Below are positions 15,310-62,359 of a DNA stretch of 64,000 nt, piece after piece. The DNA is from Oculina patagonica. Taxonomy: Eukaryota. The stretch is taken from positions 28,024,001-28,088,000 of the forward strand of contig NC_135759.1 in assembly GCF_052425735.1 (NCBI RefSeq). Reading direction: 5' to 3'. The number at the start of each line of letters is the position of its first letter. The stretch's first letter is position 1. Below the pieces are notes generated by a model. That model made no database searches. It was not told the DNA's origin and was given only the letters and a program-made list of their open reading frames with translations. A program made the translations under genes and the position numbers.

Positions 15310-17243
15310 AGTAAATCTTTATTGTGCCTTACACTCCAAAAGGAGGTATTGGTCTAGTTACAATAAAGGTGTTATAGCAACTATGCTAACAAATTACTTA
15401 ATAACAAACAATGAAATTACAATGCAAACGTTTACGGTAATTATTGGACTATTAATTATACAACTATTTATTGATATAACTTTCAATTTAAAATTTCTTT
15501 TCTTTTTTGAAACATTAGGAAGATATATTTAGCTATGATTCTAGAGGTAGCATAATTATCTAGTTTAAGAAGGTACTTTATTTTTTCATGATCAGTTAAA
15601 TCTACAAAGCGAGGATCAGTTTGTGACACGATTGAATGAAGCTCTTTTCTAATATCATTATACCCTTTGCAATACATCAAAAAATGCTGTTCGTCCTCTA
15701 TGTGGTTATCCTTACATACCAAGCACTTTCTTTCTTCAACTGGTATGGATGCTCCTGCATTTTCATATTTTCCAGTCTGTATGCGTAGGGAATGTACCCC
15801 TAATCTTAGTTTAGTTATTTTTATTCGATGCGCTGGATTTTTAACTGTAGTGAGATACTCTTCTAATTGGTAATCTTTTTTAACTTCTTTGTGAGTGAAT
15901 TTTTCTCTAGAGCTAACTGACACGCAATTTCGGACCTTTGACCAATTTTGGAAATAATTTTTTCTTAACCTATGTTTAATTTTAGAGCAAGAATTCGTTG
16001 AAAGTTGTGGGGCTGATGTGTCATTATCGGAGAGAATTCCTAATGCTTCATCATCATTTAATAAACTAACAGATTTAGTATGTTTTTTGGCGTAAAGAAA
16101 TGCATCATTTAATATGGGATTGGTTATCTTATGTTCTAATCTTTGAAAATAGCATAAGATAGATGCTTTAATGTCTATTGCTAAAGGGTATCGACCTAGT
16201 TCTGCTCTACATGCTACGTTTTCTGCATACCATGGTACATTTAATGCTTGTTTGCAAAACCGGATGTGAACTTGTTCAATTGTACTTTTATCGAAATGTG
16301 TTTTGTATGATAAAAGTTCGGGTCCCCATATTTCACAACCATACAAAAGTATGGGTTTAACTAAAGCATCAAAAAGTTTATTTCGTATCACAATTGTTGA
16401 TGAATCAATGTTGGATAGAAATCGTTTAATGATGGAAATAACTTTGGTAGCCTTTTTGCTAATTATTTCTCTTGCATAGGTGTAACGACCAGAAGATGTC
16501 ATTTCTATGCCTAGATATGTTTGTTTGTCGACAATATTTAAAGTTTCATTGTCGTATTTAAAATCTTTTTTGTGTTTGTTCTGACCGTTACCACTAAATA
16601 CAATGATGTTTGATTTTTTGGTGTTTACTTTTAGCTTCCATTCTTGAGCGTGCTTATGAATAACGTCAAGTGATTGTTGCAATCCTTCTGGAGAATCGCT
16701 TAATACTAATAGATCATCTGCGTACATTAGGCAATTAAGTAATTGATTGTTTAATACTACCCCTTTGCATTTGTTGACTCTAAAGTAATCTGGTAAATCA
16801 TTCATAAACAAAGAAAACAGAACTGGACTTAATCCATCACCTTGCCTTATGCCTTTATTGCATGAAAACAGATCCGTTGTTGTGTTTTTATTTATGCGAA
16901 CACAACTCTTAATCGAGGAATACATGGACTTAATGACATTTAGGAATTTGCCTCGATACCGTAACGTTGCAACTTATAAATCAACCCAGACTGCCATACG
17001 CTATCAAAAGCTTTCTCATAATCAATAAAACCAACATAAAGCTTCTTATGTTGTTTAGTGTACTTATGAATGAGTTGTTGCAAAATAAAAAGACTATCTG
17101 TTGTTCTCGCATTTGGTCTAAATCCAAATTGTTCTGGGTTGAGAATGTTGTGAGTTTCGATGAATTTATTTAATCTTGATTGTAAAATTGATGTGAATAA
17201 TTTTCCTAAACAACTTGTTAGAGTAATTCCCCTGTAGTTGTAC
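15310..17243 (-). mobile_element. Non-LTR retrotransposon (RT plus C-terminal CxxC..HxxxxC; RTEX-like), 5'-truncated, inside an HSP70 intron
   Basis: NYRGITL, QFGFR, FIDYEKAFDSV (ORF 16940-17317), then a 1-bp frameshift at ~16955 and GIRQGDGLSPVLF, LMYADD, YLG, LLYGCEIWG, ERKCLVC...EDEQHFLMYC (ORF 15483-16925). The clade label is an inference. Confidence 0.92.
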
Positions 17244-35114: not shown

Positions 35115-36383
35115 TTATTTTTGTTTAACATGGTTGCACCTTCAAAAAGGCGGCAGAAATATGTTGATACCGATTGAGACCCTTGGGAACTCTTTTCCAG
35201 TTACAGTACAATTCAACATAAACTTACCTCTTGAGGAAAGTTTCGGCACGTCGATAGGCCGGGAAAAGATACCCTGGTGGAAGTATAAGCTGGCGCCGAT
35301 CTCCTTTCTCTTCCTTTTTGCTTTTACTTGCTTCTTTACCTGCCTCTGTGTATACAAGCATTAAAACTGACTTTACTTTAAATTCACTTAAAATGATCAA
35401 GTTCATAGACTGTGAGAAATGAACGATGCATTACCTTCATTGTCAATTGCAAAAATATCATAGTGATAATCACCGCATTCGGTGGTGTATCCACAGCAAC
35501 AGCAAGGCGTAACCTGACAAGGACATCCACATCCCGCTAATCCACAGCCACATGGTGTAGCGCAGCCACAGGATCCAACACAGCCGTTGCAGAGAGGATC
35601 CGAAAATCCACATCCACAACTGCAACCGCCTCCACAACCGCAGCCGCAGCTGCAAGGCTGAGCACATCCGCAGCCACACATCTGCTGACATCCACAGCAA
35701 CAGGGCTGTGCACAGGTGCAAGGGCATTCATGAGTGACGTGATGAACGTGATGCACACAACAATCGTGATGCACGCAACAGTCGTGATCGTGTTCGTGGT
35801 GATGACAGACGTCTTGATGACAACAACAGCAAGGCTGACAGCAGCAACATGGCTGACAACAACAGCAAGGCTGGCAGCAACAGCAGCAGCCACAGCAGTT
35901 GTTGTTTCCGGAATTTTTGTCACCGTTTTTATTATTATTATTATTTGTTCCACAGCAACAGCCACACCCACAACAATTATTGTTATTATTGTTGTTGTTT
36001 TCGTCCTCGTTCTTGGCAGCTGGTTTGTTCTGATCGGCCTGTGTCGTCTGCCGGGCAGGCGGTATAGCAGTCTGACTGGGTTGCTGACTTTGATTTAGCT
36101 TCTCGGGCTTATTTTGAGGTAAATGTTGCTGTGCCGCCGGTTTGATTACATCATGAACACTCTGTTGGTTTGGCAAAGACGGAGCTGAGTTAAAATTTTG
36201 AGAAGGCGCATTCTTTACCATTGGAGGTCCAAGTCGTAGACTCGGATTTCTCAAAACCTGGTTACCACGAGACTGAACACGGGGTTGTTGATTATTTCCA
36301 TACACCGGATTAGGAGCAATTGCATTGTCAGTTGTCAAAACGGCACTTAAGATAGCCAACATCCATATAGACAGAAATGCCAT
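35115..36383 (-). CDS. Secreted Gln/Pro-, poly-Asn-, Cys/His-rich protein (cluster gene 6, ~363 aa)
   Basis: Exon 36383-35435 (signal MAFLSIWMLAILSAVLT; Q/P-rich region; N-runs; CCCCQP x3; HHHEHDHDCCVHHDCCVHHVHH; CGCGC), exon 35345-35228 (DRR-QLILPPGYLFPAY-RR) and a probable last exon 35139-35115 (less certain). Confidence 0.82.
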
Positions 36384-37226
36384 TTCTGAGGATCTCAAAT
36401 GAATCGTGTGAAAAGTAGGATGTGCCAAATCACTTAAGTCAAATTGAAAAGGTGGGTAATAGCGCATTACCTCATAAAACAACCTGTTTAATCACTTCAA
36501 AAATCGCTTTAGCTCGTTGACATGTACTATTAGACAATAGAAACCTGACAGATCTACAAATCGAAAACAATACGATTTGTGGTTTTGTCAACACTAAGTC
36601 AATAAAAACGTTTAGAATTTGGTAGTTAATATATTGTAAGAAACGATGCAGGTACTAGAAGATCGTACGGTGGTGAGATGGTAAATCACTGCAGTTAAAA
36701 CATGTTTCAAAATTTTCAGTAGCCTTTACCTCTAGCAGGTCATGAGAACGAAAGGTTGTAACAGTGTAGAACTAAGAGATAAATCACACTCAGGAATTAA
36801 TTCCTTCGCGGTGAATTATCACGATATATGAAAACTAAGGAAAAAATTTTATACAGATCACTAAAAGGAAAGGTTTATTCTGCCACAAGTTAATTATCAA
36901 AAGGGAGTTAGCCTTTTGTTGGAAGAAGAACGCCAGTAAGCGATTAGCTAAATAGTTCTAACGTTACAATGTATGCCGCTGCACGATCAAACGAATATTG
37001 GAGTCCATTGAGATAACAGTGAAACTCTCGTTCTCCAGGTAAAATTTCCGTGCATGATAAATGAAGTACATCGTACGGCAGGTCTGACTGTTTTCATAAA
37101 ACAACGCCTGTTTGTAACCTAAAATACTGAACTGTTTTTAAGAAATTGACTTTTTATATAATTTTAGTTTCATCTACAAACTGTGATTTTCTAAAAAACC
37201 TCAGATTTTTCAAAGTAGGTAACCAC

Positions 37227-39762: not shown

Positions 39763-41946
39763 ATGAGGTTTTTACAACTTAAAGCGCAAGTTGCTGTCTA
39801 TCTTTCGCTTGTGCTATTTAATTTAGGCGTGGTTGAGAATCGTCAGGCTGCTCCCAGCACCCTTCTAGAGGCATTGAATATCACGAAGAACGAAGAAAAC
39901 AAAAAGAGTGGTCCATCTTCCAACCATGGCTTTCGAAACCGACGATTTCCTTCCAGCTTTTCATATTTCTCTAACTGTCCTTTAAAACAGGGAGTCGTAT
40001 TTCTTGGAGGACCCTGTGGTCCTATGAGAGCAACATGCTGTGGTGGGTTTGGTTGTGCTTCTGGAATTGGTTTCCCTATTTCGGCTGTGTGTTGTAAGTT
40101 ACTTTTGATTGTATTCCTTTTCTCCTAAAGCTGACAAATTAATCATCATTATACTAAATTGGTAATAGCACAATCATCATTATACTAAATTGGTAATAGC
40201 ACAATGTGTTCATGCTGTTAACGTTTATTTCAAAAACTGATATGTGTGCGATGCCAACCCAAGCCCAAGAATCCTACATCTCCAGATGCATACAAGACAA
40301 TAATACACCCGTATAGAGTAAAACGTCTCTTCAAGCGCACGTATTATGTTTATGATATGACTGAAAATATGTTTAGATTTATGAGTATTTTATTGTTTAT
40401 TGAATAAATTTGAAAATAAACTTCAAAATTTCAAGTGTTCGTGGCTACCGTAGTCTGACACAGTGTTTCGTCCCTGCCAGGCGACTCTTCAGAGACCTTT
40501 CCGCTTTCAATTTCCCGTTCGCAAGCATGTAATGATGGCAGCAATCTCGTAGAGAATTGCGCTCAAAGTCCCAACTGCACAAAATCGCGAGTGAAAATTG
40601 GCAACATTTTAACAGTGTAAATTTGAACGTGCCTTTTAATTGGAAATTCCTCATCTGGTAAGTATATGTATTAGTCAAGAATCATATCACGTTTAGCTTC
40701 ATTAGTTAATATATGACGGGAAGCGTTTTTTCTCTCCTGCCTTACATTGTCCTTAAATTTACTTTTTTGAATAGGTTCATGGACAAGTTGCAGGGTAGCA
40801 AGCCAATCAGGAAAAATAATAAACGCTGCCAAACGATTTGACATCACAAGCCTACCGGCAGCACACCCATCCGCAGTGTCCATAAAAAAACGACCAAAAC
40901 CCTCCAAAGACAAGCGCAAACATAATCGTGCAAAGCAGAAGAAAATCGACAAGGACTCGTCCAAGGAAAGCAAGGAAGGACCTAAGATAGACTTAGAGTT
41001 AAAGCTGAATGATGAGCCCAAGCCAACAGAACAAGAAGAGGTTGTTGTGGGCCAACCAATTCATCACAGACCATGGGTACCCTACATGCATAGACCCCTC
41101 TATCCGTTCCACATGCGGCATCGTCCTTATCACTTTTCTCATTATATGCCTCATAATATGAGGTTTTCACATCCCTCCTACTGGCGATTCCAGGGTTACT
41201 TTCCCCATTTTATGAGAAGGAGGGCTCCTTGGTATATGAACCCATCTGATGCAAGAAATATCCATCGCTATCCTGAATATCAGTTTGGGGATGTGCAGTT
41301 TGTACAGTCTGACCATCCTTTCAGGTCCAGACCACCTTTTAGAGATTATAATGATTTCAGCTCTGACGTTGAACTCCTAGACAAACCGGAAAAACTCCAT
41401 GAAGACTTCACGCACAGCAAAAACAAAATTAAAAGTCATAAAGAGTATAATCGGCTCCATGAACAAGACCGAAAGACGGTGGATGACTCAGAAGACGCAA
41501 AGGCAAACACATTTAGACCAGGCAGTTTAAGGCAAACAGAAGCTGGACGCATACAAGGAACAAATCCCGGAGTAATGGAAAACCAGCAGGTCTTGAATTT
41601 CAATCCCACGGAAAAGGAGGACGAAGAGACCAATTACCCTGAATACAAAAGCGAATTTAACACAGACAGATTCTGGTCTTCAGTTGATAAGAGGCAAGGA
41701 AAAGATAACAGCCAGTTTAGCTCCCATGAACCAGAAAGAGAAGAAAATGCAATATTTAGAGACTTTACGTCCGATGACCATGGATTTGATCTGGATGAAA
41801 TTTCTTCCTCCCATTCAAAAAGAAAAGAATCAACTAAGGAACGAGCGAAAACAAACAGAGTCAGCAAAGTCCGTTCTGGTGCAGGTGTTGTGAAGATAAA
41901 ATCTGATTCTCTTGACATCTCCAATGCAATAAACTCATTTTCTTAA
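39763..41946 (+). CDS. Secreted precursor with Cys domain and His/Pro/aromatic region (cluster gene 7, ~500 aa)
   Basis: Exon 39763-40093 (signal, RNRR site, Cys/Gly segment ending AVC-T/GTAAGT) spliced in phase 1 to exon 40775-41946, which is in frame with ORF 40876-41946 (Lys-rich; HHRPWVPYMHRPLYPFHMRHRPYHF...; acidic tail). Confidence 0.82.
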
Positions 41947-43002: not shown

Positions 43003-44657
43003 TTATATTGTTATCACTATTGTATTTTTGTTACTCTTTCGTCGTCCAGCTTGTTTAATAAGTCTTATCTTGTGTTTTGGAGGATGAAAACGAGCGGTTG
43101 GCGGGGACGTTGTGGGTGATTGTGCTGTGACAGCTACTAAGGTAGCTAGTGTACGTGTGGTGCCATAGGTAACCCGAGATGTCGAGCTAGCTTGTGTTCC
43201 CGTGGTAGACTGGCTACCTGGAGCGGGGCTGGTTGTCCCTATGGGGCTAGACGTTGTTGGTGCTTGAGGTGTAGTAGCTGTCAAAGTGGGTTGTGTAGTT
43301 TTCCCCAGGGTGGCGACACTAGTAGCCTGAGATGTTGGAGTGGTTTGCGTCTCTGTCGTAGGCTGACCTCCACCGGTGGGGCTGGTTGCCCCAGCGGGGT
43401 TTGACGTTGTTGGTGCTTGAGTTGTGGTAGCTGACAAAGTGGGTTGAGTGGTTGGCGCTTGGGTGACGACGCTGGTTGCCTAGTGATGTTGGACTTGTTG
43501 GTGTTTCTGTCGTAGGCTGACCGGTACCTCCGCTTGTGGGGCTAGTTGCTCCTACTGGGCTAGACGTTGTCGGTGCTTGGGTTGTAGTAGCTTTCGAAGT
43601 GGGTTGAGTGGTTGGCGGTTGAGTGGTCACACTGGTAGCCTGAGATGATGGACTAGTTTGTGTTCCTGTCGTTGGCTGACCCCCACTGGAGGTTGTCTCT
43701 GAGGGGTTAGAAGTTGTTGGCGCTTGTGTGGTAGAAGCTGACGAAGTGGGTTGAGTAGTTGGTGCTTGACTTGAGCCACTAGTAGCCTGAGATGTCGGAC
43801 TAGAAGTTGGTGGTGCTTGCGTTGGCTTGGCCCCAGGAGGTTCGGACCCCGGGGTTCCTGATTCTCCTTTGCCCACTCCACTGCAACCTATTTTTATTGA
43901 GTTAACAGAAAAATACGAGGTTTGCGGTAGTAGTGATTTGTCGATAATGAGTACTAGTACTGTTCGCGCAAATTGGTCACTTAGAGTGGCAAAAATAGAT
44001 GTAAATGATGTATTTTTTAAACTTGAGCGTGGCAAATATGGAAATGAAATACACCTTGATGAATAAATAGATTCTTACAATAAGAAACCCCATGAGAAAT
44101 GTTAAGTATTAACCTGAGTTATCGAAACCAAGTTCAGTTGTGAAATAAAACAAACAGCTCTTCGAGAAATACTTACTGCACCATTTTCCGCATCGGCATG
44201 GGAAGCAGGGAACGGGTTGATGCCATGTTCCAAATCTATGCATATCATAGGAGCCTTCCAAAGGGAAACCATATCCGTCCCTCCAGCCGTATTCCGGCCA
44301 CTGAGAATCAGGAGCTGAAGGCCACCATTGACTGGGATATTGGGAAGATATGGGATTTAATCTATAACCATAGATGTCGGTGAAACACCGCTTCGATAAC
44401 CAACGAAGTTTACCGGCTTTTTTACTTTTGGGGACAAAACCTATGATTTTTCGCTTGTTTTTACGGCTCGAAGGACCAAGCATATCAAATTTGAAAGCAT
44501 GGTTTAAGTGATGGTTACTTATGTCGTCTCTTAATTCATCTATTTCACTATCCCTGTCATCCGCGTCCTCTGCATCCCGATGGAATCTTAGCAAAGCATT
44601 CGATTGAAAGAGAACTGCTTGGAAACAAATGGTTAGCAAAAGCTTGCTGGAGTTCAT
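43003..44657 (-). CDS. Secreted precursor with Trp/Pro/Cys domain and mucin-like Thr/Ser/Pro tail (cluster gene 8, ~454 aa if one frameshift is corrected)
   Basis: Exon 44657-44177 (signal MNSSKLLLTICFQAVLFQSNA; SKR-CF; ends CFPCRCGKWC-A/GTAAGT) and exon 43887-43003 (TTQAPTTSSP repeats); one extra base at ~43482 joins ORFs 43319-44035 and 43003-43437. Confidence 0.8.
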
Positions 44658-46293
44658 TTTGCCCTGAGTTTTTCCCAACACTTTGTCTTATCGTTGCGAC
44701 TTATGATAATGACATAATGTTCGGATACATTTCTAGGGGAATATATATGACATCATTTTCAAATCTAAATAGAAAAATGGGAATTAAGCTGCAATGCAGC
44801 AACTAAAACAAGGAAAACAGAGGAATCCCGATGGAAAGTAAAATGAACTGCTCTGTGCATTGTAGCTCACCGCTATAACTAAAAAAGTGCCTCGGGATAT
44901 ATGAAGAAGTGGCATTTATGTTAGCGCTGCTTACCAGCTTTAATGTCAAACATAAACAGTTACGCCCCCTCTGATAGATCGCTTAAAGAGACAAAGAGAG
45001 GACTTGCTTGTTTCCATGGAATCCTTTACACGCTTCAACGGAGTTTTGCAAACGACCAATATCAGAAGTTTTCAAATGATTAGGTAAACCAAGTGGAGTT
45101 TGAACACTGATTTCCAAAACATAATTTGCGGCTCATAGAGTGCCATTGCCGTTTTTCCTTGTACCAATACTGATTAGTATTATGGCCGGATTAACAAGTA
45201 GTAAGCTCTTAGCATCGAACAACAGACGAATGTAAGTAAAATAAGCTTGTGCAATTTTAAGAGAGTTATAAAAGTTTGGATCATCCTCGAACTGTGTTGT
45301 GAATCTTTGACTAACTTGCTTTGTATTGAACGGACGCCAAATTCCTTCTCTGCTGAATTAAAACTATCAGGTCCGAAAGGCCAACCCCCGAGAAAGAAAA
45401 TATCCCGCTTTTCTTTGGCCCCTCTCCGTTTTTGACTCCAGAGAAACTAAATTTATCTCTTGTTATTTTGTACTTTGGAAGTGAGTGAGAACGAGCGACC
45501 GAGCTACAGCTCTAGTGAGTGGGGTCTCTTTCTCTAACACTGGCTCAAGTAGCTTCGTTTCCATTGTGCAATTTTTTATTTACCAATTGAATTTCCTTTA
45601 GTTAAGATCAAGTAAAATATTAAAATCATTTAAGCTTTTGTTATATTTTATTGTTTTATGCTTGTTCGTCTGTCGTACTTTTCCTTAAGTTTCTTTAGCG
45701 TATCATAAAAACTTTAAATAAGTTCTTTTACAAGAATAACCGCAAAATGCACTAGAAAAAACATTTGCATTATCGCTACATTTGTAAGCAAACTGGCGCT
45801 TAAATCCACGTTAATTACAAAGCAATAAGGCACAGCTTCTTGTTCGTTTCTTCTTGGTACCCGAGAGAGGGCTAATGAAGCCCTGGATCGCTGTGAAGAC
45901 TGAAACGCAAACTTTATAATTATGTTTCTTACAAACCTAACGGTGGTTTAATAATTCTTGGGGCATATTTTCGTGGCCCAGACCCTTGAAGCTATTCACA
46001 TTTTTTGTAGCCTTTCTCATGACCTCGAGTTCTCACAGTGGAAAGTTAACAACATTGAGTAAGATAGCCATGCAAATGTATTAGTTTATCTGAACTTTAA
46101 CGATTTCAATCAATGCAACAACATAGGCGCATCGTGGTAGATGAAAAGGAAGAATTAACAGTAAAAGAAATTTAGCCGATTATCTACGTGAGATAAGTCA
46201 TTTCCTTTTGGTTTCATTTTCTCGATATGCTGTTGGTGCTTTGCTGGTACATGTCAGCTCGAACCAAACACTTCTCTAAGCTGCAAGAAGCAA

Positions 46294-47562
46294 TTAATTT
46301 TTTTGTTTCTGTTTCTTAGTTGGTGTATTTTGCCCCTTTAATTTCCAAAAGAATAGACTACCCACAACTTGGTCAGCGGGTGACGCTTGCTGAGGAACTT
46401 GCCAGTTACCATAGGTTGCCTGGTAAGGATCATCGTAAACAGGGGGCGCCTCCGCAACATCTGGGGAAGCGCCGTACGTGATATCTTGGCGCTTTATTCC
46501 TCGTTGAACGTTGATGTTCTTTCCTTGTTTCATTTGAACTGGACCTTTGAAATTTGCTTGTTTTCCGACGAATGGATGAAGTTGTGATGGACCACCAACC
46601 TTATTTGATGTTGGTTGGCAAGGAGCAGCATCGTTGAACTGTGAACACTGATCACTGGCACCACCTCCTCCACCTCCACCTTCTTGACCACAACCTGATT
46701 TTTAAAGAAAAGAATCAGCAAGCACAGGAAAAAATATATTATTTCACAGAAAATTTTATTATAAGCTGTAACGCTATTCAAGTTGAAGCAATCTTCTAGT
46801 AACGTTACTTAGGCAGCGCACCGAGTTTGACAGTGTACATCAGCCTGTCCTCTGATAAGAGGAAACTGCTTGCTTGTTTTATTTCCAGTAAAGCAGGTAT
46901 TATCTTTATAGAGAAGGCTAGAAAGGCAAATAATTGGGAAAAAAAAAACAGTTGTCTGTCTAGGTAAAGCCTTATTTAGTTGTTGACATCTTCAATTTGA
47001 GTTCTCGTTTTGACACGATCTTGCAAAGAAGTTAACATTTTTTTCTAAACTTGTTAAGCTAATCATCAAAGCAGTCAACCAGTTGAGCGAATGACTTACA
47101 GCACCAGCCGTGGTTGTTACAGCCACAAGAGCATCCAGGCATTCTCCACGGCCCTCCACATCCGAACTGATTACATCCAAACGGACTTCCGTGTCCTCCC
47201 CAACCTCGATGAAAATTCGGTCCGTATTCCGGGTATAATGGACCTGGCCCCCATCCCCAGGGACGAGGCCAATCTAATAGGCTGTCTTCGAGCCCTACTG
47301 GACAATCATACGGAGAACCTAAGAAGCATCTTCTATTTTGGAACTTTTTGAAGTTTTTTTGCTCGCGTCTCCTTTTGTCGTTGATCTTGGTTCCGTCCGC
47401 TGAGTCCACGATTTTTCCTGTTTTACTCGGCTCTACGTTTGGCTCATCGTCAAGTGTTTCTCTTCGACTCCTCTTTAGGATTCCCTCAGTTTCCTCGGCA
47501 AGGGTGATAGTCAAACCGAGGAGGCACAAAAGTGTCAAATGGAATAACAACGAACCCGCCAT
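46294..47562 (-). CDS. Secreted precursor, RR-CF...WCC family (cluster gene 9)
   Basis: Exon 47562-47100 (signal MAGSLLFHLTLLCLLGLTITLA; KRSRR; NRR-CFLG; ends HGWC-T/GTAAGT) and exon from 46694 (C-CGQEGGGG...GIKR-QDITYG...). The 3' end is uncertain: either a donor at 46361 with a small last exon near 46280, or read-through to 46294. Confidence 0.82.
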
Positions 47563-48256
47563 ATTCTCAACTGACTTGCTGGAGAAAAGTTTCAAATTTT
47601 TCTGTAATTTTAAGTCATCTTAAGTTTGAGGTAAGATTTGTAAAAATAAAATCATCAAAGGAATGTTTTGACGATCAGCCATCCCCTCATTAACATTTCA
47701 AGACCTCAGAAGTTTCGTCTTAAGTGTCTCATTAGAGTACCTCAAGTCTATCATAACTCGTTTTAAGATATATTCAGACATTTTTTCTTGTTGCTTTAAG
47801 GCAAAAAATTCCTTTTATAAGTTTTAACCACGGAATAGCACCAAGACTTTATTTGTCGTCGATTCTTATGACCTGAATCAAACCTGATGGCTTGCTTGTG
47901 GTACTACTATAATCGCCTTCCCGGGAAACACTTAAACACACCCATTATGACATGTTTAATTATTTAACGGTACGTAAAAGCAAACATTTCTTGAAAATGA
48001 AAAACATAGTGAAATCTGAGAAGATGTTACTGATGAAGTGCCTTGTTCTTAAATGAATAAGTTGCACGAGCAGTTCGCCAAAGAAATCACCACAAGAAAG
48101 TACTAACAATCCATGATTAACGAAAGCACCAAAATGAAAATGTTTCTAGCCAAACGTTTGTACAGCTTCATGGCTTTGTTGGCAATATTTGTTCTCCCGG
48201 TCATTTAACCAAAGCCTAAGTGAGCTTAAATAAGCAAGCTAAGTCGTTAAGATAAG

Positions 48257-49552
48257 CTATCCATTGAGTTCTTTCCGGGCAATGTTAATGATAATACGGT
48301 CATTGACCTTTTGTTTGTGTTGCTGAGCATCTCTGAGTGGTTTAACAGCGTCGGACGCTTTGTCGTTTACTTTTTCGGTCTCTCCACAACCTGTAAAACA
48401 AATAAGACTTTTATTGTTTAGGCAATATTTATGATAATACGGTCACTGTTCCTTTGTTTTTGTCGATGGTTATGAGAGTCCATGCATTTGATTTGAATTG
48501 TTTTTTTTTTCCATTAGTACAACCTACCATAAGCTTCTACGATAAGTAACCACTTAGTCTGCGTTTTAGCTTAGGTTGGAGGTGGGAGCTTATCCCGTTT
48601 TTCGATTCCCCCCCCCCCCCCCTCCGGATCGGATGTTAATTTATCTCAGAGTCATATCCAGTATATTGGATGAAGAATACAGCACAATGGCCCAGGCAGG
48701 CACAAACCTGGACCGCTATATCCGGAGTCCAGCGTCGCCGTTTGCCTCTCTTTTGAGCAAAGATTTTTTCTTGTTAAATAGACACATACAAAATATGAGA
48801 AACTGATTAAAATTGGCATGCTTGTTGCACGAGTCCACTGTTGGTCAAAATAACTAAATTTCGTCTGCTGAGTAAAAGGTATACATCCACAGCATTCTTC
48901 GATATTTAACCACTTCACAAAACGTCAACTTTAAACATTGCGCGATCTAAAACAAAAAGCCTTAAACCAAGAACAACCAGAGTTTTAATAGTGTTCTTAA
49001 TAGTGGGTAGTGGTTTGCCAGTTTCAACTTACAGCACCATCCTTGTTGACCGCATGGATATCCACCCTGCTGCGGCCCTGTCTGACTATTGTCATTAAAC
49101 CTCTCCTTCCAGTTCCAACCATATGCATTTTGCTGTAGGTCGCCATCATACCTGTCCTGTACCCAAGCCCACTCATCTCCAACGTCGTATGGTGGCCCTT
49201 CTGCTGGAAAGTGAGGAGGCACTTGCGGACCGACTAATGGATCATTCCATTGAATCTGTGTCTCCAAAAATCCATCTGGGCAACCGGCGCCTGGTGAAAG
49301 CCCACAGAAGCAACGTCTTGATCGCTTACGACTGGCTGGTTTGGTTAGATGTTCGTCTAGCCTGTTGTGGAAGTGTTGATTGTTGTGGCCGGCTTCAATT
49401 GGCCTCGCCTCATATCTCTTGAAAGCGTGCTCACCAATTTCGAGTCTTCTTTTGATTTCCTGTGAACTTTGTTTCAAAGGATTGATGTTCTTTCCTTTAA
49501 TTCCAAAAGCAAGGGGGAAAAGGATAAACAATTGAAGCAGTAACCTGTCCAT
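48257..49552 (-). CDS. Secreted precursor, RR-CF...WCC family (cluster gene 10, 217 aa)
   Basis: Exon 49552-49033 (signal MDRLLLQLFILFPLAFG; RKRSRR-CFCG; ends QQGWC-T/GTAAGT) and exon 48390-48257 (C-CGETEKV...NG*). Confidence 0.85.
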
Positions 49553-50442: not shown

Positions 50443-51602
50443 TCAACGGAGAATATTTCGTCGAATCGTCAGTGGAGATGGGATATTTCTTCTCATTCTT
50501 CCGTCTCCTGTTGTAATGGAAAAAGATACATAACTGAGTCGCTTACATTGCTTAAGCAGTTTTATGTCTCGAAAAAGCTAAAAATCAGTTATTTTACTTC
50601 TTTAACCTGGAAACTATTGTCGCTTTCCCTAATATTGCTGACCCTTTTGAAATGAACAAAATCAGGCCAATACAAGCTAGACACCCAAATTAGTAAACAG
50701 CTAGGAACTGGAACACATCTTAACATGTAGTACCAGGGAGAGCCTCAAAATAGCAGTATTAAGTTTTAAATGTAAAATTTCGAAAACAAAGCCCTTTTCT
50801 TTATAAAATCCTTGATAGCAACCTGCTTCAATAATCGTGCTTAAAAATTATAATTCCTTTATCATATCAATTATCGAAACAAATTAATTCTCCAATTTTA
50901 TAATAAAGAAAAAATAATTGATATTTTTTTCAATTTTCAAATAAATTGTTTCCAATAGCTTTAAGAAAACAACAATTTTTTAAACTTACTCAGCCAAACG
51001 TGCTGAATATGCCCGTCGTTAAACAGACGCGGTGAACGTCGACCATAACCATTATGATGCATGAACCCGCCGCCATGAAATTTACATCCGCATCCTCCAC
51101 AACCACAGCAGCAACCTCCACCGCATCCATACTCCCCACAGCCGCACCCAGCGGCATCCAATTCATCAGCAGCGCCAACACCTCCAAAATCTCCATTACT
51201 GCCGCAATTACCACATCCACATCCACATCCACCACAACCACCAGAGTTTGAATTACCAACGTAGTCCCACGGAGACAGCCAGCCGGGAGGACATACCTGA
51301 GGATGGGAACGTTTTTTGGAATTATTTTCTCTATTTCCTTTTCTGTGGCTTTCGTTTTGATCGTCGTTACTTTCTTTCTCTTCGAATTCGCCATTTTTAG
51401 CAACATTATGAAGGTTTTCTTTATCGTGTTCAGATTTCAATGGATCCGTCTCGTCTTCGCTAACATCTTCGTGAATGCTTCGTACTGTGGATTCCATTTC
51501 TCCTTCGTAAATTGGCAGATCTATGTTTTCGCGGCCATGAGAAATCGTCATTTGGACAGAGAAAAAAATTACTAACACAGCATTTAGTGTAAAAACTTTC
51601 AT
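50443..51602 (-). CDS. Secreted Gly/Cys-rich precursor (cluster gene 11, ~225 aa)
   Basis: Exon 51602-50990 (signal MKVFTLNAVLVIFFSVQMTISHG; acidic pro-region; KKR; GCGGCGCGCG and GCCCGCGGCGC; phase-1 donor GTAAGT) and a probable last exon 50507-50443. Confidence 0.78.
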
Positions 51603-53771
51603 TTTGATAGAAAATGGCTCCTGACTTCTCCACTTCAAATAAATGTATTCGAAAATAAAACTCTCAAAAAGCAGGTGCCACTTTCATGCAGTAAGAATAT
51701 CCTCTATTGACCTCCCATTATGAAGGAGACAGATTTTGGTGATGTCACTGAGGCATGAAAAGTATCAAGGAAAACGTCTTTCTTCAATAAACCAAAACAA
51801 TTATAGCTGGTCTCCAACTCAAACTAATATTTTTGTCCTTCATAGAAAATAACAACCACTTTCTGAAGAATTTAAAGAAAATAAATCAAGTTTATCCATT
51901 TTGATAAAATCATGGGTGTGGTTTGCTTTCTGGTACCATTGCGATGCTATTGTTAAATTATAATAAGTTACCCGAGGCCGAAAGCCAATAGCCATAATAT
52001 AATTTTCGTACTTGAAACTGTGATGTCTCCAGTTCGAAAAACTTACATCGGATTTGTAAATTCTACAAGAACGAGCGCGTCTTATATCAAAAGATAAATA
52101 TGTCATATTGCGAGTTTATTTATCCGGTTCTGAAGACTTTTCGGGCTTGACAATAGCACAGTCTTTTCACTTAATATAGCCGAGATTAGCAAACGCCAAG
52201 AAATCTACTATCAGGAACAAATAGCTGAAAATTTGTATTTTTGAATCACGAGTTACTCAAGTATAATTCTCATTTTATTTTTACTGCACTGGATTCGATG
52301 CGCAAAAGTATCAGATGTACAACAAAGGACGGTTGATCAAACAAAAAAGGATCATTTCTTCGTACTGCCTATAAATTCAATTCACGGGATCTGCAAATAG
52401 GACATCGTATCTACTGCTTTAAAATATACTGTTATCGTATTATACACAGAAGTGTCTACTGAAACATGAAACAGTGCAAATACCCTTACGTCCTCCGGTT
52501 ATAAGCTATTGGCTTAATGTGTTGGTTTACTTACAGGAAAAGGGCTTCTATTTTTCGTGAGGGGTGGGGGTATAAATGCTATCAGAAAAGCCTTAGATGT
52601 GTACTGAGGAATAATAAAGATACGCAAGATACCTTGCCATTTTCCGTCTTTGATTTTACTTTGACATGAAATCGATCATTTCAGTCACTACATTTCGAAC
52701 AGTAACAAACTTCTAACTTGCAGTTAAAGATAAATCGAATATCCGGTGCATGTGATTTCTAGTAAATATTGTTCACTAGCCCAAAACAACTATACTCTAC
52801 TTGCATTATTTTTCCCACCAATTTATTAATGCAATTTATCGACAACTTTGTGTAAGGACATAAGGACAAGTGGGGCTCTTAGGCCATGGGGCTTGCAACC
52901 GAAATTATTTTTTGTAAGCTAAGCGGAAAGGTTCGAGAAAGGTGGGTTAACTGAATATCGGTTAAATGCGGGTGTTGGGGGGAAGATACAGAAAATATTT
53001 TATACGTACTAAGTAGGGTATGACGTCAGTCAAAGTAAAATAAGGGCTTGTTTAAGCCACCAAAATAGAAAAGCTTTCCATAAACAATATAACACCTTTT
53101 TGATAAGAAGACTAAATTCTCACTTGTTGAACAGTTTTAGCTAAATCAAGTTTATAAAGGATATATTAAAAAAATTGTTATTTTATTATAGGAACCTTCA
53201 AGTCGTGACTGAATCCTTCATGTGTGACATATATTTACAAAAAAGTTTCAATTATGCTCTAAGAAACATTTTCTCTGCTTGATTGGCCAATGGAAAGTGA
53301 AGACGCGTGTTCACCTTTTTGTTTTCGACATTATAGTCTTTGAGCTCAGAACAAGATGTATCGATAAAGACTTATCAATTTAAAACCATCCTGTACGTTT
53401 GGTAACTTGACCTGTTTCAAAAGTAATCGTTCGACGATCAAGTGGAATATTTCCTTTACTGAGAGCTTGTACGCAAATTATTTATCCCTTTATGCAATCA
53501 TCGTACAGGACAACAGGAAAGTGGCTTCAGTTATTTTCATACAATTCATCTTTATTTATCAAACCACGATTCTATTAATTTACATTACAGACTGGTTAAA
53601 CAGCTCGGTTATCAAGCTGAGAGAAATATATTAACACACCTGCATGGTTTTTGAATATGGATACATAGTGCTTTTATAATTGCCTTTAATTTTCGTGAGG
53701 TCGAACGCCTATGTATTCTTGTTCTGCTAAATTGAAGTCTTTTTTACAAACCTTTATACCTTTTTTTACAA

Positions 53772-55656
53772 TTAATGAATTTTTGACAGTGGCTGATGCA
53801 CTTTTGGAGATGCTTGAGGAAAAAGAGGTTTATCCTTTTGAACTTTATCTGGTTTTTGCTGTGGGAGGTCATCTTCTTTACCTTCAGCATCTTTACCGTT
53901 CTTCTTACAACCTGGTGAGAACCAAAACGCAACAATCAACAAAGAAGTAGGAACTTCGTATAGTAGCCTTCGTTTTATACTGAAGGGAAGGGTGGCGAGG
54001 GTTAACGTGAACGTATCGTTTTGTTTGGGAGTGCTCTGGATAATTCCCACTAATTTCCCTTCGCAGATCTAGTATCTATTTTCTCCACATCATCTCAGAC
54101 CAGGTGTTAAATTTGTTACACATCTAAGACCGGAAATAAATTGACATTCCAAATGCGACTAACTGAAAATATTTTAAATCTCAGGTTAAGAGAAGGAAAG
54201 TAAGTCCCCATCTCAGCCATCCTGCCCTATCCAGCAGTGAATACCCGAAAGGAAATTTGATCGTCCCCCCCTTCCGCTAGGTTCGTTGTCCTTCTCAAAG
54301 GAAACACGCTGCATGCTAGAACAGCGCGGTAGCAAACATTTCTTGTGCGATTTTGTATTTAATACCAAATAGAAACAAATAGCACAAAATTGCAAAGTTT
54401 GAAAACAACAGAAAACAGTGACAGAAAAAGCCTTCCATAGCTTCCAAAATTGTTCCGCCAGTTCTTTTTTTTTTTTTACAATGGATTTTAAATTTAAAAA
54501 TATTGAATTGTTTTTGTTTGTTTGTTTGTTGTTTGCTTGCTTGCTTGTGTGTCTATGTCTCACTTTTTTTTGTCCCTTTTGATAGTTGCCACGCCGCTTG
54601 CCGTATAATTATCAAAATTTATTCCAAATAATAATTATTTTGGACCCAGACTAATGATTGTTAGTGCTAAAGCTACCGGGTTTTGTGTTTGCATGCTTGT
54701 ATTGTGGAAGAATTTAATTATCTTATGCCTAAGTATTAAAACACGTTACTTACAGCACATCATAACAGGCGGGTATCCACAGCCCCCTCCGCAACCACAT
54801 CCACCACACCCACCACACCCACCACACCACCACATCCACCACATCCACCACATCCACCGCATCCACCAAATCCGCCAAATCCACCAAATCCACCTCCGTA
54901 TACGGGATGTCCTACTCCGTACCCACCATAACCACCCAAGCCATAAGGTGGTACCATACCACCGAAGCCTCCACATCCTAGGCCAGGCCAGCCACCACCG
55001 AAGCCACCACATGGTACGGTGTAAGGTCCACTGCAGCCGATCACCTCAAATGAGTGCGCAGGTCCGCAAGGAAATGGGCACATACATCTTCTCCTGACCT
55101 TTTTCATGCGGTTGACAGGAGGTTCAAGTGGCGTTATCTCGATATTTCCAGGCGGACTTGCAAAATCCAATGAAAATGGGTCTTGCTTTACCTTTACCTC
55201 TTTCTGGGATGGGTTCTGCGAGCCCGGGGGTTGCAATGCAGTTATAGTGAAAGGTCCTTGGATTCCCATTGCATTTTGCATCTGTAGTTCTTCCGTGTCG
55301 GAATCAGATTTCTTTTTACTTTTCGATCGGTCACGTTTTGGCGAAGACTTCTCCTCTTTTGTCTCACTATCATCTTCATCTTCGTCTTCTAAGTCATCAC
55401 CACTAGAATCCTTAATCTTTTCCTCATCTTCGAGTTCCATGTACACGTCTCTCTTTTGTCTCGTTCGCGGCTCCTCCGTGGTACTTCCATCTTCTTCGTC
55501 TTCATCATCAGTTTCACCAGAATTTTCTAACTCATCGTCAACATCAGGTTTATCTCCGTGCCTGGAAGTTGGGTCGCCTTCGTCTTCTTTGACTGGCTTA
55601 GCTGGTGTCAAAACGAACGCAAACAATAGGACAATTAACACAAAAACGGCCCTCAT
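53772..55656 (-). CDS. Secreted Gly/Cys/Tyr/Phe-rich precursor (cluster gene 12, ~347 aa if one frameshift is corrected)
   Basis: Exon 55656-54754 (signal MRAVFVLIVLLFAFVLTPA; very acidic pro-region; VRRR-CMCP; GGFGG, GGYGG and (CGG)n; ends VMMC-T/GTAAGT), with one base missing at ~54826 in the GGATGTGGT repeat; exon 53911-53772 (C-CKKNGKD...IH*). Confidence 0.8.
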
Positions 55657-55946
55657 GTTTTGTTTTTCTTTGCTTGAGGAGTCAAAATTGTTCTTTTGCC
55701 TAATGTTTTTGCATCCGTGAGTCACAGTTTCCGAGAGAACGTAATGTTACGTCATTGTTTCCCTGTTCAAGTGGCGTAAAAGGTCACCTGTAGAATTGTA
55801 TCAAGCACTCAAATAAGACCTGTTAGCCTTGCTTCTAAAAGATCGAAGATCTTCTTAATATTTTCGTAAACAAAAGCGTATTGTAGGCGCCCACTGAGGT
55901 GACAATGAACAACTACAGAAGTGTGGAATGAACCACTTGATCGTAA

Positions 55947-57009: not shown

Positions 57010-60000
57010 ATGGCGAAGGTATCATCAAAGATATTGATATTTCTCGGATTCCTTTGCGTTTACATATACGGATCAAAAGGTAGACCATACAATCTCGACG
57101 ATGTAACTGCAGCGGAAGATCAAAACAAATTTGAAGAAAGCGATCTGTTGAAAAGATCAAAGACTGGCAGTGGCGGGCAAGACAAAGGTATGGAATTCAT
57201 TCGACACTAATTCGGATAAATTGAAAAAATACTACATCGTTCACGGTTTGTTTGTCGCCTTATGAGTCTCACCTGCAAGTAATGTCTTTAATTAAGAAAC
57301 GATATAGGTCAAGAAATTGATGGCTGATATTGCTATTATATATAAAACTAGTTGTAGGTTAAATTTCCCATTATGATATATATTTTGTCAAAATTGAACC
57401 ATCTTTCATTGTTTTCGGTCAACAAAATACACTAAGGCCATTGCTTTAATTACATTCTGGAATTATTTGTGAGGTTTCTCTAGTCTGATTTTAGATGCAT
57501 CTCTCCGACAAAGCTAAAGGAATTGCTTGTTCTTTTTCATAGCAAACATAAATGATCTACTAAGACACTGATAAAAATTTGAAATGAAATTTGTCATGGC
57601 GGTAATAAAAAGAGGAGTAAAAAATACGGTTGTGTGTTTTTAGAAGCAAACCCACATAATTCAGTAGTTTTCGTGCAAAATAGATGAGATTAACTAACGA
57701 TCGATCGATATTTTTTTACGTTTAGATAAATGTTAGCAAAACCAAAACTCGGTCTAAAACGCACTATTATATTTTGATATAACTAAGGACAAGAAAAAAG
57801 ACAATCTGCGAACTGCATTGAACACAATAGCCACCTGCAATAGGTGTCTTACAATTAGCGATCAGGTTCAAAGGAGAGGGTGGCTGTTTTCAAGAAGTCA
57901 GGTTAGCTTAAACTGGTTCAATGATTTTTCGTTGGATGTTTTTGTTCGTCTAAATTACATCAGTCGCAAACTTCGCAAACCTAAGCGAAGGAAAATAAAC
58001 TAAAAATACTGACAACATAAACATATTTATAGAGCATATTTCCACCTTTCAAAATTAAGTGTCAAAACTAGTTTTTATTTAAACAGTCGATGAGATGACG
58101 TTTCCAACGTCTTATCAGAAACCACCGTAAGACCTTAATTCTCCTATTTTAAACTGCTTTTCTCAATTAATTAATTATGCCCCTATGTGTATATCAAATA
58201 AACACTGCCAGTGTTTGAAGATAATATTAAAAGTAGCACTCTTCTTATTTTCAGGCCACAAAGAATATAAGGGAAACAAAAAGCAAGTCATAGATGCCCT
58301 CCATCTTGGTCCCTACCACCACGGGCATCCATGGGGCACTATATCACAGTGGCCGGGTTTTCACTGGGGCGGCCACCCATCGCGTCACGGAGGGTGGACC
58401 GGTTATCCATCACTTGGAGGATGGCACAAATCTCACATTTCCAAAAAGAACTCTAAAAAATCTGCGCACAAAGCAGCTTTGAAGCGTCATATGCTTCCCA
58501 CGTTTGCCTTCCCGACTTATGGATTCGCCTACCCCTCCTTAGGGTTTGCTGCCGTGCCATTCACTCCCTCACCTGTTCCCTGGGGTTACGCAGCATACCG
58601 TTCCAAAGTTCCTGCAAAGTCAACAAAAGGACAAACCAGGTCTTCAGTGAAGGGCTCTGAGGCGAGCAAGAGATGGTGGCCTGGATATATGGGGGGATGG
58701 GGTGGTTGGGGATTAGGAAATGGAGGATATCCCGGATGGGGTCCTTTAGGCGACTGGGGACATGGTTACGATTTTGGTGGCTTTGGTCACGGATGGGGCA
58801 TAGGTGTTGGTAATAGCTTTCATCCTTTTTTGAGAGCTGAAATTCCTGGAAAACTAAGCAAGAAAGATAAGGCCCAGAAGCGTTGGTGGCCTGGTTACAT
58901 GGGTGGATGGGGAGGTTGGGGCTTAGGAAACGGTGGTTATCCTGGATGGGGACCTTTAGGTGATTTCGGGGGCCACGGATGGGGTGGATACGGTTACGGG
59001 CACGGACTCGGATTAGGTTATGGTTACGGGCATGGATTTGGATATGGATATGGACACGGCCACGGTTTCCGCTCCAATGTTCCTGGTACCGAAGACGGAG
59101 AGGAAGAAGGCCCAAAACGAGGATTTATAAACCAACCATTCGGAGGTGTTGGCAACCCATGGTATGACTACGCGCCATTTGCAGACTATGACTATCCTTT
59201 CTTTGGCCACAGCCAATACATTCCTTATCCAGAAGCACTGTACGGGGATTTCTTGCCATTTTATGGGTTAAGTCCGTACGCAGCAGGTCCTTTTGGATAC
59301 GGGTTCAATGGAATCAACGGTTTTCATGGAGGACATGGCTTTTTTAAATCAAAAATCCCCACAGGCAAATCTAAGAAAACACAAAAAAACAAAGAAGAAG
59401 GAGCCACCAGCCGGCACTTTGTTCACAATTTTCATCCTGGTCGAATGGGCTGGGGAGGAGCCATATACCCCGGTCACGGGTACCACGGTGTCTTTCCTTT
59501 GTTAGGCGCTCACACTTACGGCCTTTATGGTGCAGGTTTTTACGGTCCTTATGGACCTCCGCACGGGGCATTTGGTCCGTACCATAGGTCAGACGTCCCC
59601 GAACATGAAGAAGAAAGCACCCAGAGTAGACAAGTGATAAACTATAATCCTGGTTGCTGTGGATGGGGTGGATGTAATTATCCTGGTTGTGGCTATATCG
59701 GTGGGTGGACCTGGCCCTTACCATGCCATTTCCACCACTGCGGTTGTTGCCCATGCTGGACACGTTCCAAAGCCCCCAAAAAGCAAGAACTGAAAGAGGA
59801 GAAAGGAAAGTCTAGACAAGAAATTGAAAGTCCGGGAGAGGGCGAAAGCAACGAGGGCAAATCAGAGGACCCGAGAACACGTCCTCACCTTGAGGGTGCC
59901 GACTTGTTGCAATCAGAGATGCAGAATCTGGCCATGGGGTTTCCTGGGATTGAAAAACTGCACACGCCTATGGGTCTGACGAACCCTGAAGGTCAAGAAT

Positions 60001-62359
60001 CCCAGAGTTTCAGTGACCAAGAAAACCAAGAAATGGAATCTAATGAGCAAAATTCGTCACCTGAACAAGCCTTGGCTCCTGCAACTATTGCTGCTATGAC
60101 AGGAATGACCCCAGAGGAAGGAAATGGCTTCAGAGCGCCCTCACAAGGAAACATGGAGGAACAACAAGAAGGCCAACAACAATCTGCTGGTGATTTAATG
60201 TCCAGCTTCAATATGAGTCCTTCGAATGAAGGCGAAGCACAGGTTGAATCGTTTGGTGAAACAGGTGAGCTGATTGCGAAAGGCGCTTTCTTCCATGAGG
60301 GCGTGATCTAGATATTTGTTATTAACACTCTTTCACCTTCTTTTGTAAGGAAATCCAAACATGTACGCTACGGGAGCAGAAGAACAAACCACGGAGTCTG
60401 CCTCGCGCAGAGCTGATATTCCCGGCCAGACGGAGGGAGATCTAATCAAGAAACAGGCTGTCGCATATCCATATCATTACCTTTACCCTGGGTATGCAAT
60501 GGCGCACGGAATCAACCCATATTACCACTTCGCGCCCATAAATTATGTAAGGCATACATTGTGACTTAATTCCCCTTAAGCACCATAGTCTCATAACCTA
60601 GTTCGCAGTCGATCTTCCACTAAGGGTTGTTTCTTTGTACAAGGAACTTGATTACGTACACAGATTATGGACTTGTCTGTTTATTGATTGACCCTTCTAG
60701 TTCGAGTCATAGCAATACAATGTAAGACTGATTATTTCATCCAGTATAAACTATAGGACACCCGAAGGTGAAAATATCATACACGTACTGCTATTGGATT
60801 TGACGTAATCTTTCTTATCTGTTGCTGTTAATTAAATTGTGGGCATTCAGGGGGAGGGATGGTCGTGTTAAGCACCTGAGGTCGGATTTCAAGAGAGCAA
60901 TGCATCTACGTATTTCCTAGACTGTTTAAGTGGGGCTGTTCCAGGAAACTTATTGGGAGGCTCGTTGGCCTATTGGTTAGTGCGCTGGACTCCGGATCGA
61001 GCTTTCTGGGTTCGAGCCCCGGCCTGGCCGGGCACTGCGTTGTGTTCTTGAACAAGATACTTTACAACCATAGTGCCCTTCTTCACTTAGGTGTATAAAT
61101 GGGTACCGGCGAATTTACTGCTGGGGTTAACCCTCCCATGGACTAGCATCCCATCTAGGGGAGAGTAAAAATACTCCTAGTCGCTTCATGCTGCTGAAAC
61201 CGGGATAAGCGCCGCCCTGATGGGCCACTAGGCTCATATGCAGAATTTGCCTTAACCTTTTCATATTAATTACTTTTAAATGTTCTGTCTTGCTAGTTAC
61301 TTTATAATACTTCTCAAGTGGCAAGTATTTGCAGCTATTGTTGGTATTGCTGTGTTGTGTTTGTGTATGTTTTTTTTAGTACCCTTTGCCTTGAAGGATT
61401 CCACTGTGAATTTGAGCTCTTGTTTGTCTGTCTGTCTGTCTGTCTGTCTTCTGTTGTCTGTCTGTCTGTTGTCTCTGTCTCTGTGTGTCTGTCTGTTGTA
61501 AATAAAGTATCCTCACTCTGTCTGTCTGTCTGTCTGTTTGTTTGTTTGTTCGTTTGTTTGTTTGGCTGACCAAAACCTGTAGACGACAGAGTTAATAACC
61601 AGTGAATTTTACGTTTCCTTGTTTTTTAACACCCCTTTAGGCACAACACCTGATGCAGTACCCTTCAGCTTACCCACTGGCACACGCTGGGTTTGCTCCA
61701 CAAGCATTAGCAGCATACCATGATCATCCCACCCACTCCATTCACGTGGGAGCACCAAATGTCAATGTCGATGTTCACACGACACGGGAACATGTTGCTC
61801 ACCACTTTGAAAAACAGGTAGGATGTCGTTTTGCATGCAATGTGCTTTAATAATTTGTTTATTGCAAAGTACTATGATCGAGGTATTTAATCTTGTCTTG
61901 TTTCATGATCGACTCAAATAGCTGCTGCGATGTGCCCAAAAAGTGTTAGAAATTTTATCTCTTTATCGGTTTTACATATCTTACATCCCGTTCATATTAA
62001 ATAACATCGAGACCAAAGCGTTACGGAGAGTTAAATTACTTTTTTGCATCTCCCAGTAACTGAAGATTTTGGCTGTTGGCAAACTTGCAATCAGATTAAC
62101 TTAACACGGTCCTTGGAGCGCACGCACTGTTTTAATATTTACTTTCCTTATCGTCTCACTTTTTTCTCACTACCTTTTATTTCAGAAAGGAGGCAAACTA
62201 AAAGAACTGGTGGGACAGTTTTCAGAGAAGTTGAAATTCAAGAATAAACACAGGCAATCTTCCCATAAGAAGAAAGTGACGAAAAGGCAGATACCTTCGT
62301 TTATGTCTCCAGCCATGAACCGACAAATGGGATTTGCACCTGCTCTTAGGTCTATATAA
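57010..62359 (+). CDS. Secreted multi-module polyprotein precursor of Gly/Tyr/Trp/His/Pro-rich peptides (cluster gene 13, ~911 aa)
   Basis: Exons 57010-57187 (signal MAKVSSKILIFLGFLCVYIYG), 58255-60264, 60350-60546, 61641-61817 and 62186-62359; all GT-AG with matching phases (1,1,0,0) and an open 2736-nt frame. Confidence 0.87.
60955..61260 (+). mobile_element. tRNA-derived SINE (intronic)
   Basis: Head TGGCCTATTGGTTAG...GGTTCGAGCCC; body homologous to the 13230 and 14007 copies. A degenerate copy lies at ~48560-48735 (-). Confidence 0.82.
61420..61565. repeat. (TCTG)n/(TTTG)n microsatellite
   Basis: Direct reading. Confidence 0.85.

Follow-up and report, generated by a model that had tools for sequence, protein, structure and literature searches.

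A duplicated Trp/Gly-rich peptide held nearly fixed in a predicted-disordered, block-built coral protein

In a 64,000-nucleotide stretch of the genome of the coral Oculina patagonica (assembly GCF_052425735.1, contig NC_135759.1, positions 28,024,001 to 28,088,000; hereafter the window, to which all positions refer), the gene LOC144643893 encodes the same 29 residues twice, at 58668-58754 and 58878-58964, each copy being 87 nt long and translated in frame. The peptide is Trp/Gly-rich, starts with KRWWPGY and ends with GPLGD, and its two copies, which we call the twins, are unlike at 13 of 29 codons, amounting to 14 bases, with no amino-acid replacement. We consider it very probable that the duplication arose before the sampled stony corals split from one another, that silent sites have since diverged freely, and that each copy has kept some 25 of its 29 residues fixed. 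The host protein (RefSeq XP_078359408.1, 1285 aa, "uncharacterized protein") is built from alternating uncharged and charged blocks, and we propose below that it may be the precursor of a secreted structural material.

The gene model itself was already known, standing in RefSeq as "uncharacterized"; the novelty lies in the twin-peptide signature, in the architecture of alternating blocks, and in how far and in what pattern the protein is conserved. Literature searches by accession, locus name and peptide string found no paper that mentions the protein, and a keyword search for Gly/Trp-rich cnidocyte proteins returned nothing; the matches to "GGWGGWG" were degenerate primers and were discarded as not relevant. 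It is a common assumption that low-complexity disordered sequences evolve by composition alone. The saturation of silent sites between the twins offers a built-in control, and the pair indicates that a low-complexity, predicted-disordered peptide can stay conserved residue by residue for the lifetime of the stony corals. This finding alone does not resolve any long-standing question.

Results

The twins differ at silent sites only

A sequence-only reading of the window had pointed out a 29-codon duplication with 13 silent codon differences and unrelated flanks, and had taken it as internal evidence for a real gene whose exact peptide sequence is under strong purifying selection. The duplication itself is borne out both by in-frame comparison and by an independent repeat search, which recovers the pair as 86 nt at 85% identity with an in-frame spacing of 210 nt, or 70 codons. 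The Arg codon differs by two bases (AGA against CGT). Resemblance between the copies stops abruptly on both sides: the 20 in-frame codons upstream have 2 residues in common, the residues downstream differ at once, and the stretch from 58755 to 58877 is unrelated to the sequence that follows copy 2. The twin region is single copy, with no paralogue in the 529 Mb of its own genome that were searched.

Silent change is possible at 26 of the 87 sites of the twin, and all 14 differences fall on those sites; about 21% of random single-base changes in the twin would be silent, which gives 14 out of 14 a probability of ~4e-10. Silent sites between the copies are near saturation, since the degenerate codons that remain identical (10 of 23) are close in number to the 7.7 expected when the peptide is back-translated twice at random with the codon usage of exon 2, and since the proportion of synonymous differences (pS, Nei-Gojobori) reaches 0.69.

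Orthologues fix a core of about 25 residues

We found 15 orthologues at 51-83% identity, all annotated as uncharacterised or hypothetical; those from named species come from Acropora cervicornis, A. millepora, A. palmata, A. muricata, Montipora foliosa, Porites lobata and Desmophyllum pertusum. The sampled corals span both major clades of stony corals, the "complex" and the "robust". The search for the peptide in other species located both copies in Acropora, Montipora, Porites, Desmophyllum and other corals, and across the alignment of 15-16 stony-coral sequences the twins are present in every sequence but one. Invariant columns number 21 of 29 in copy 1 and 24 of 29 in copy 2, so free substitution, which would have spoken against strong purifying selection on the peptide, is not what the orthologues display.

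The earlier reading calls for two qualifications. The constraint on the exact sequence holds for about 25 of the 29 positions and not for the remaining four (16, 19, 26 and 29), which are tolerant: in six other corals the copies differ at one to three of them. The perfect 29/29 identity in O. patagonica marks one end of a range, with about 25 residues forming the fixed core. Among the 29-residue windows of exon 2, the twins rank first and third in conservation, and their proportion of nonsynonymous differences (pN) is 0.02-0.065 against five corals, where the whole exon has 0.09-0.22; the exon as a whole is constrained as well, with an omega (dN/dS) of 0.09-0.17 against the same five corals, so the twins form a conservation peak and not an isolated island. 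The proposed codon comparison and dN/dS check, with 14 silent and 0 replacement differences and this exon-wide omega, agree with selection on the protein.

At the DNA level, we compared the copies in eight relatives. Orthologous copies differ at 49% of degenerate codons for the same residue, and copy 1 and copy 2 differ at 71% (Mann-Whitney p = 1e-12); within single species the two copies differ at 55-85% of degenerate codons. At silent sites each copy groups with its counterpart in the other species, across seven corals. The copies therefore form separate orthology groups, which places the duplication before the sampled stony corals and argues that no homogenisation has taken place since.

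The protein alternates aromatic modules and charged linkers

Exon 1 encodes a hydrophobic leader, a putative signal peptide that is conserved in Acropora and Montipora, followed by an acidic propart that ends in Lys-Arg here and in Montipora and in Arg-Arg in Acropora. In exon 2, seven uncharged aromatic/Gly modules alternate strictly with seven charged linkers, and an acidic stretch rich in Glu, Gln and Ser follows. The modules are 37-75 residues long and contain 0-1 Lys/Arg, 17-31% Trp/Tyr/Phe and up to 48% Gly, the latter in module 4 with its Gly-Tyr-Gly-His repeats. The linkers measure 15-25 residues, have 0% aromatic residues and are mostly Lys-rich, two of the seven being acidic. The motif [RK]-[SA]-x-[VI]-P opens each linker, and the Arg at its end does not vary among 11-16 orthologues; this Arg is preceded by Lys in four of seven linkers, including both that lead into a twin, and the Lys-Arg before the twins is invariant in 15 orthologues.

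The twins form the heads of modules 3 and 4. Five modules carry a looser head of the form x-Pro-Gly-x-x-Gly-Trp-Gly-Gly ... Tyr-Pro-Gly-x-Gly, so that the twins stand out as the best-preserved pair in a module array of older origin. The exons past exon 2 add ~550 residues in which Pro, Ser, Ala, Gln, Met and Phe are abundant. AlphaFold, run on the whole of exon 2 with 16 sequences, gave a pLDDT of 31 throughout and no fold, which predicts disorder along the whole stretch. Pfam contains no match to the exon pieces or to the full-length Acropora orthologue, a PDB sequence search gave no match, and an ESM Atlas feature search gave no usable one.

Relatives outside stony corals carry matched heads

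An exhaustive phmmer search returned 9 matches from 1.84 billion representatives, all of the same family, word-indexed searches found only corals and the sea anemone Actinostola, and a search with the full-length protein added no further relatives; the family is detected only in Hexacorallia. The matches outside stony corals (P0017 from Actinostola, P0016/P0053 and P0018) each have two head copies. In the DNA comparisons, loci L010 and L012 stood in for the exact A. cervicornis and P0016 proteins. The most divergent coral-like orthologue (P0015, L003:1001-2818) has a single head joined to the tail of module 4, which looks like the in-frame loss of the 70 codons between the twins.

Where heads differ between lineages, they do so in pairs. 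Residues common to both copies are Met8 and Pro-Leu-Gly at 26-28 in stony corals, Ser8 and Ser-Gly in Actinostola, and Asn7, Trp16, Trp19 and a Trp-Gly-Val-Gly-His-Gly end at the hexacoral locus L010. At L010 the heads match over 31 residues, and the 8 differences between them are silent without a single replacement (8 of 22 degenerate codons), and the Actinostola pair matches at 25 of 27 residues with 16 silent and 2 replacement differences (15 of 20 degenerate codons); the flanks are unrelated in both. The two Actinostola copies spell Ser8 differently, as AGT and as TCT, codons of the two serine families that are not connected with each other.

Recurrent gene conversion between the copies, in place of selection on each, might also keep the peptide identical. 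The replacements that each non-scleractinian lineage has in both copies show that some homogenisation, or else parallel change, occurred in deep time, and the lower silent divergence of the L010 pair leans the same way. Yet conversion would erase silent differences, and so it cannot explain 14 silent changes beside 0 replacements; the twins' silent sites are near random, their longest identical base run is 11 nt, and the separate orthology groups persist across seven corals. We regard conversion as a highly improbable cause of the identity, and, judging by silent sites, ongoing conversion is excluded for stony corals. Over very long times both heads do change together, which either old, rare conversion or parallel selection could explain. 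Because lineage-specific residues are common to both copies and Actinostola Ser8 uses codons from two families, we have also considered that the heads may be a matched pair kept identical by selection on the protein and without homogenisation of the DNA. We rate this as rather unlikely; under it, the heads might pair mutually or feed one assembly or modifying enzyme.

The gene is spliced and transcribed

That the gene is real, as the earlier reading had supposed, is supported by spliced contigs with empty introns, by the match to an annotated RefSeq protein and by the orthologues. XP_078359408.1 aligns to the locus at 100% over exon 1 and over three of the four exons past the window end, and at 92-99% over the remaining exons in alignments that overrun splice sites. 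Transcript contigs from two public runs, presumed to be RNA, cover the exons and have zero depth in the introns; two poly-A raw-read runs contributed only 3 and 8 reads. The contigs are spliced at 57185/58253, 60262/60348, 60542/61637 and 61814/62183. Three of these joints become GT..AG after a shift (+2 for 57185/58253), and for 60542/61637 a shift of 4 nt to the right gives an equally long (1094) canonical GT..AG intron, the one used by the RefSeq protein. The gene has at least nine exons and extends ~8 kb beyond the window end (Table 1).

Table 1. Features of LOC144643893 in and beyond the window.
Feature	Position	Strand	Basis or content
Exon 1	57010..57187	+	tblastn of full-length orthologues and RefSeq protein (100%); start codon, signal-peptide-like N-terminus, acidic propart
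Exon 2	58255..60264	+	670 codons; both joints in transcript contigs; contains both twins
Twin copy 1	58668..58754	+	Residues 198-226 of XP_078359408.1; Lys-Arg site and Trp/Gly-rich head of module 3
Between twins	58755..58877	+	Module 3 tail (Gly/His/aromatic), then linker 3 (Arg-Ala-Glu-Ile-Pro start, Lys-Arg end)
Twin copy 2	58878..58964	+	Residues 268-296 of XP_078359408.1; Lys-Arg site and identical head of module 4
Exon 3	60350..60546	+	Joint 60262/60348; 3' end by RefSeq-used intron
Exon 4	61641..61817	+	Transcript joints and RefSeq protein mapping
Exon 5	62186..62349	+	Joint 61814/62183; loose contig end at 62349
Further exons past window	near window-equivalent 65221-65469, 66397-66900, 68355-68531, 71822-71908	+	tblastn on extended locus

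A minus-strand open reading frame (ORF) at 58561-59115 was considered as a gene and rejected, as splicing backs the plus strand. Contigs of one run have 0 base differences from the window over 58253-58684 and 58731-59245, ranges with both twins inside, and 18 differences in the following kilobase (59247-60262), with the other run being similar; this unevenness across exon 2 could reflect haplotype structure or stronger constraint. Intron 3 contains a tRNA-derived repeat resembling a short interspersed element (SINE) at 60959-61240, with a tRNA-like head that scores 26.5 bits in Rfam, just below the threshold of 29, and a 251-nt body with more than 3,500 first-look candidates and 40 scored copies at 82-88% identity genome-wide. 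The transcript-contig depth of 800-1500 over 60959-61240 arises because this repeat is multi-copy. The same intron has a (CAGA/GTCT)n-type microsatellite at 61415-61573 that yields artificial Cys/Leu/Ser ORFs.

Discussion

Having found a peptide kept this closely within a disordered protein, we turn to what the protein may do. With moderate confidence, and from its sequence, we propose a secreted, disordered, block-built precursor resembling a polyprotein, which would give rise to a structural material, possibly of the stinging capsule. The protein would enter the secretory pathway and lose its acidic propart at Lys-Arg, and the charged linkers would keep the sticky, uncharged aromatic/Gly peptides soluble during secretion. 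Proteases specific for basic residues could then cut at the invariant Arg that ends each charged linker, freeing uncharged peptides rich in Trp, Tyr, Phe, His and Gly, two of them with the same head, and these peptides, no longer attached to solubilising linkers, could self-assemble into the material. The head would in that case be a specific assembly or modification motif and not mere composition, which would account for the conservation of its exact sequence. Cleavage is favoured because the identical stretch starts exactly at Lys-Arg in three lineages (O. patagonica, L010 and Actinostola), because the linkers are basic at both ends, and because the propart ends in Lys-Arg; a propart of this kind is reportedly typical of nematocyst proteins and toxins. 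As to the site, we lean weakly towards a component of the cnidocyst, and the extracellular matrix or an adhesive would be nearly as likely.

Several observations weigh against this proposal. Three of the seven linkers end in Ser/Gly-Arg, which departs from the classical dibasic site, and no linker end has the P4 Arg that furin prefers. The homology matches include no RefSeq protein from any other anemone, which would be odd for a core capsule protein, with the proviso that low-complexity filters and length limits in the searches may hide relatives. For the capsule in particular, the neighbouring secreted Cys/Gly-rich genes offer little guidance, being equally uncharacterised. The supplements of two coral skeletal-proteome papers (PMC9532382 and a Desmophyllum preprint) contained neither the peptide strings nor the accessions, and with the few sequences that they hold they are uninformative either way; modules of 37-75 residues free of Lys and Arg would escape tryptic proteomics. 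The anemone homologue argues against a role in the skeleton only.

It is also possible, if doubtful in our view, that the protein is never cut and acts as an elastin-like block copolymer, with sticky or elastic aromatic/Gly modules and with Lys-rich linkers as solubilising or cross-linking spacers. KR-WW, Tyr-Arg and Phe-Lys might then, with similar doubt, be cation-pi contacts that drive coacervation rather than cleavage sites, and basic and aromatic residues do adjoin at both ends of every module. The strict alternation of uncharged aromatic blocks with aromatic-free Lys-rich linkers, the disorder predicted throughout, and the PG/GG-rich heads, which resemble the beta-turn motifs of elastomeric proteins, would all suit such a copolymer. 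So would the conserved linker start ([RK]-S-x-[VI]-P), which goes beyond the needs of a cleavage signal and in that respect counts against our precursor proposal too. But convertases usually cut at a Lys-Arg that lies exposed in a disordered secretory protein, conservation begins exactly at Lys-Arg in the three lineages, and the two acidic linkers do not fit a Lys-rich spacer.

Alternatively, cleavage might release bioactive peptides (antimicrobial, toxin-like or signalling), with the twins doubling the dose of one of them. The layout of putative signal peptide, propart and peptides between basic residues, with two identical copies, is that of such a precursor, the gene lies amid further small genes for secreted Cys/Gly-rich proteins whose basic sites resemble processing sites, and Trp-rich and Gly/His-rich antimicrobial peptides are known. 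However, cleavage would release peptides of 37-75 residues that are neutral to acidic and have an extreme tendency to aggregate, and no Gly stands before the basic residue as an amidation signal. Defence peptides usually evolve fast, whereas the twin is nearly frozen across stony corals and recognisable in the anemone, and the ~700 further residues rich in Pro, Ser, Gln and Met that follow would be unusual for a peptide precursor. We therefore consider a bioactive precursor unlikely. Whichever of these applies, a family with so clean a block design, in a cluster of unclassified secreted genes, is a candidate structural material or peptide system of corals and anemones.

Comparison with known proteins places the coral protein near Gly/aromatic secreted materials and multi-copy precursors, and it is a member of none of these groups. 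Multi-copy precursors include the nematode NLP/CNC precursors of Gly/Tyr/Trp-rich antimicrobial peptides and the plant shepherin precursor. As in convertase-processed precursors generally, the coral protein has a putative signal peptide, Gly/aromatic repeats between basic residues, and identical copies, each twin being preceded by a dibasic site; it differs in that its peptides are long, uncharged and extremely conserved, that the 1285-aa precursor has a long non-repetitive tail, and that cleavage is only presumed. Squid beak, sandcastle-worm and mussel adhesive proteins are likewise secreted, low-complexity and rich in Gly, His and Tyr (or Trp), with Lys-rich parts, and they assemble through aromatic and cation-pi contacts. 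Those proteins evolve by composition with loose repeats, whereas in the coral protein an exact sequence of 25-29 residues is frozen across stony corals and still recognisable in the anemone, and the phylum differs.

Tropoelastin and cnidoin share with the coral protein the alternation of hydrophobic Gly/Pro-rich blocks with Lys-rich hydrophilic ones and a predicted disorder, and disordered alternating blocks suit coacervation and elastic materials. There is no homology, and the coral blocks are aromatic (Trp/Tyr/Phe/His), not Val/Ala-rich or Gln/Met-rich. Minicollagen/cnidoin-type Cys domains have a regular three-residue Cys spacing. The coral protein is without Cys-rich end domains of the minicollagen type: its only Cys-rich block is module 7, with irregular spacings of 0, 4, 4, 11, 4, 1, 0 and 1. 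Cnidoin is described as a nematocyst elastomer (PMC4321713). Spinalin, given as a Gly/His-rich spine protein of the Hydra nematocyst (Koch et al. 1998, as cited in PMC9205923), resembles the coral protein in that both are secreted proteins of cnidarians in which Gly predominates, alongside His and aromatic residues. The coral protein differs in being Trp-rich, modular with charged linkers, and strongly conserved, and it has no detectable sequence similarity to Hydra spinalin, the phmmer search having returned only its own family. No direct orthologues of spinalin were recognised in Nematostella (PMC9205923).

Neighbouring open reading frames

Other ORFs of the window also look secreted, and none of the nine neighbouring ORFs searched matches Pfam. 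On the plus strand, the ORF at 3919-6477 has 852 codons; it opens with a signal-like start and contains a dense Cys/Pro block and ~500 residues of silk- or fibroin-like (Ala-Ala-Gly-Gly-Gly)n, where local GC is 0.60 and GC skew 0.48; in Nematostella, a nematocyte-specific 'fibroin-like' thread protein has been described (PMC9205923). The ORF at 40876-41946, also on the plus strand, has 356 codons, a Lys-rich start and a composition rich in His, Pro, Arg, Tyr, Met and Phe. A minus-strand cluster (22988-23431, 35403-36482, 44109-44681, 47059-47595, 48962-49552, 50961-51638 and 54760-55725) consists of secreted-looking ORFs with acidic or basic pro-regions and extremely Cys/Gly-rich ends, and three of them have low-complexity tblastn matches to the Cys-Gly-Gly tract in the Actinostola homologue. 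Judging by their translations, the minus-strand ORFs at 15483-16925, 8076-8702 and 12418-12828 resemble non-LTR (long terminal repeat) retrotransposon reverse transcriptases and an Hsp70-like fragment.

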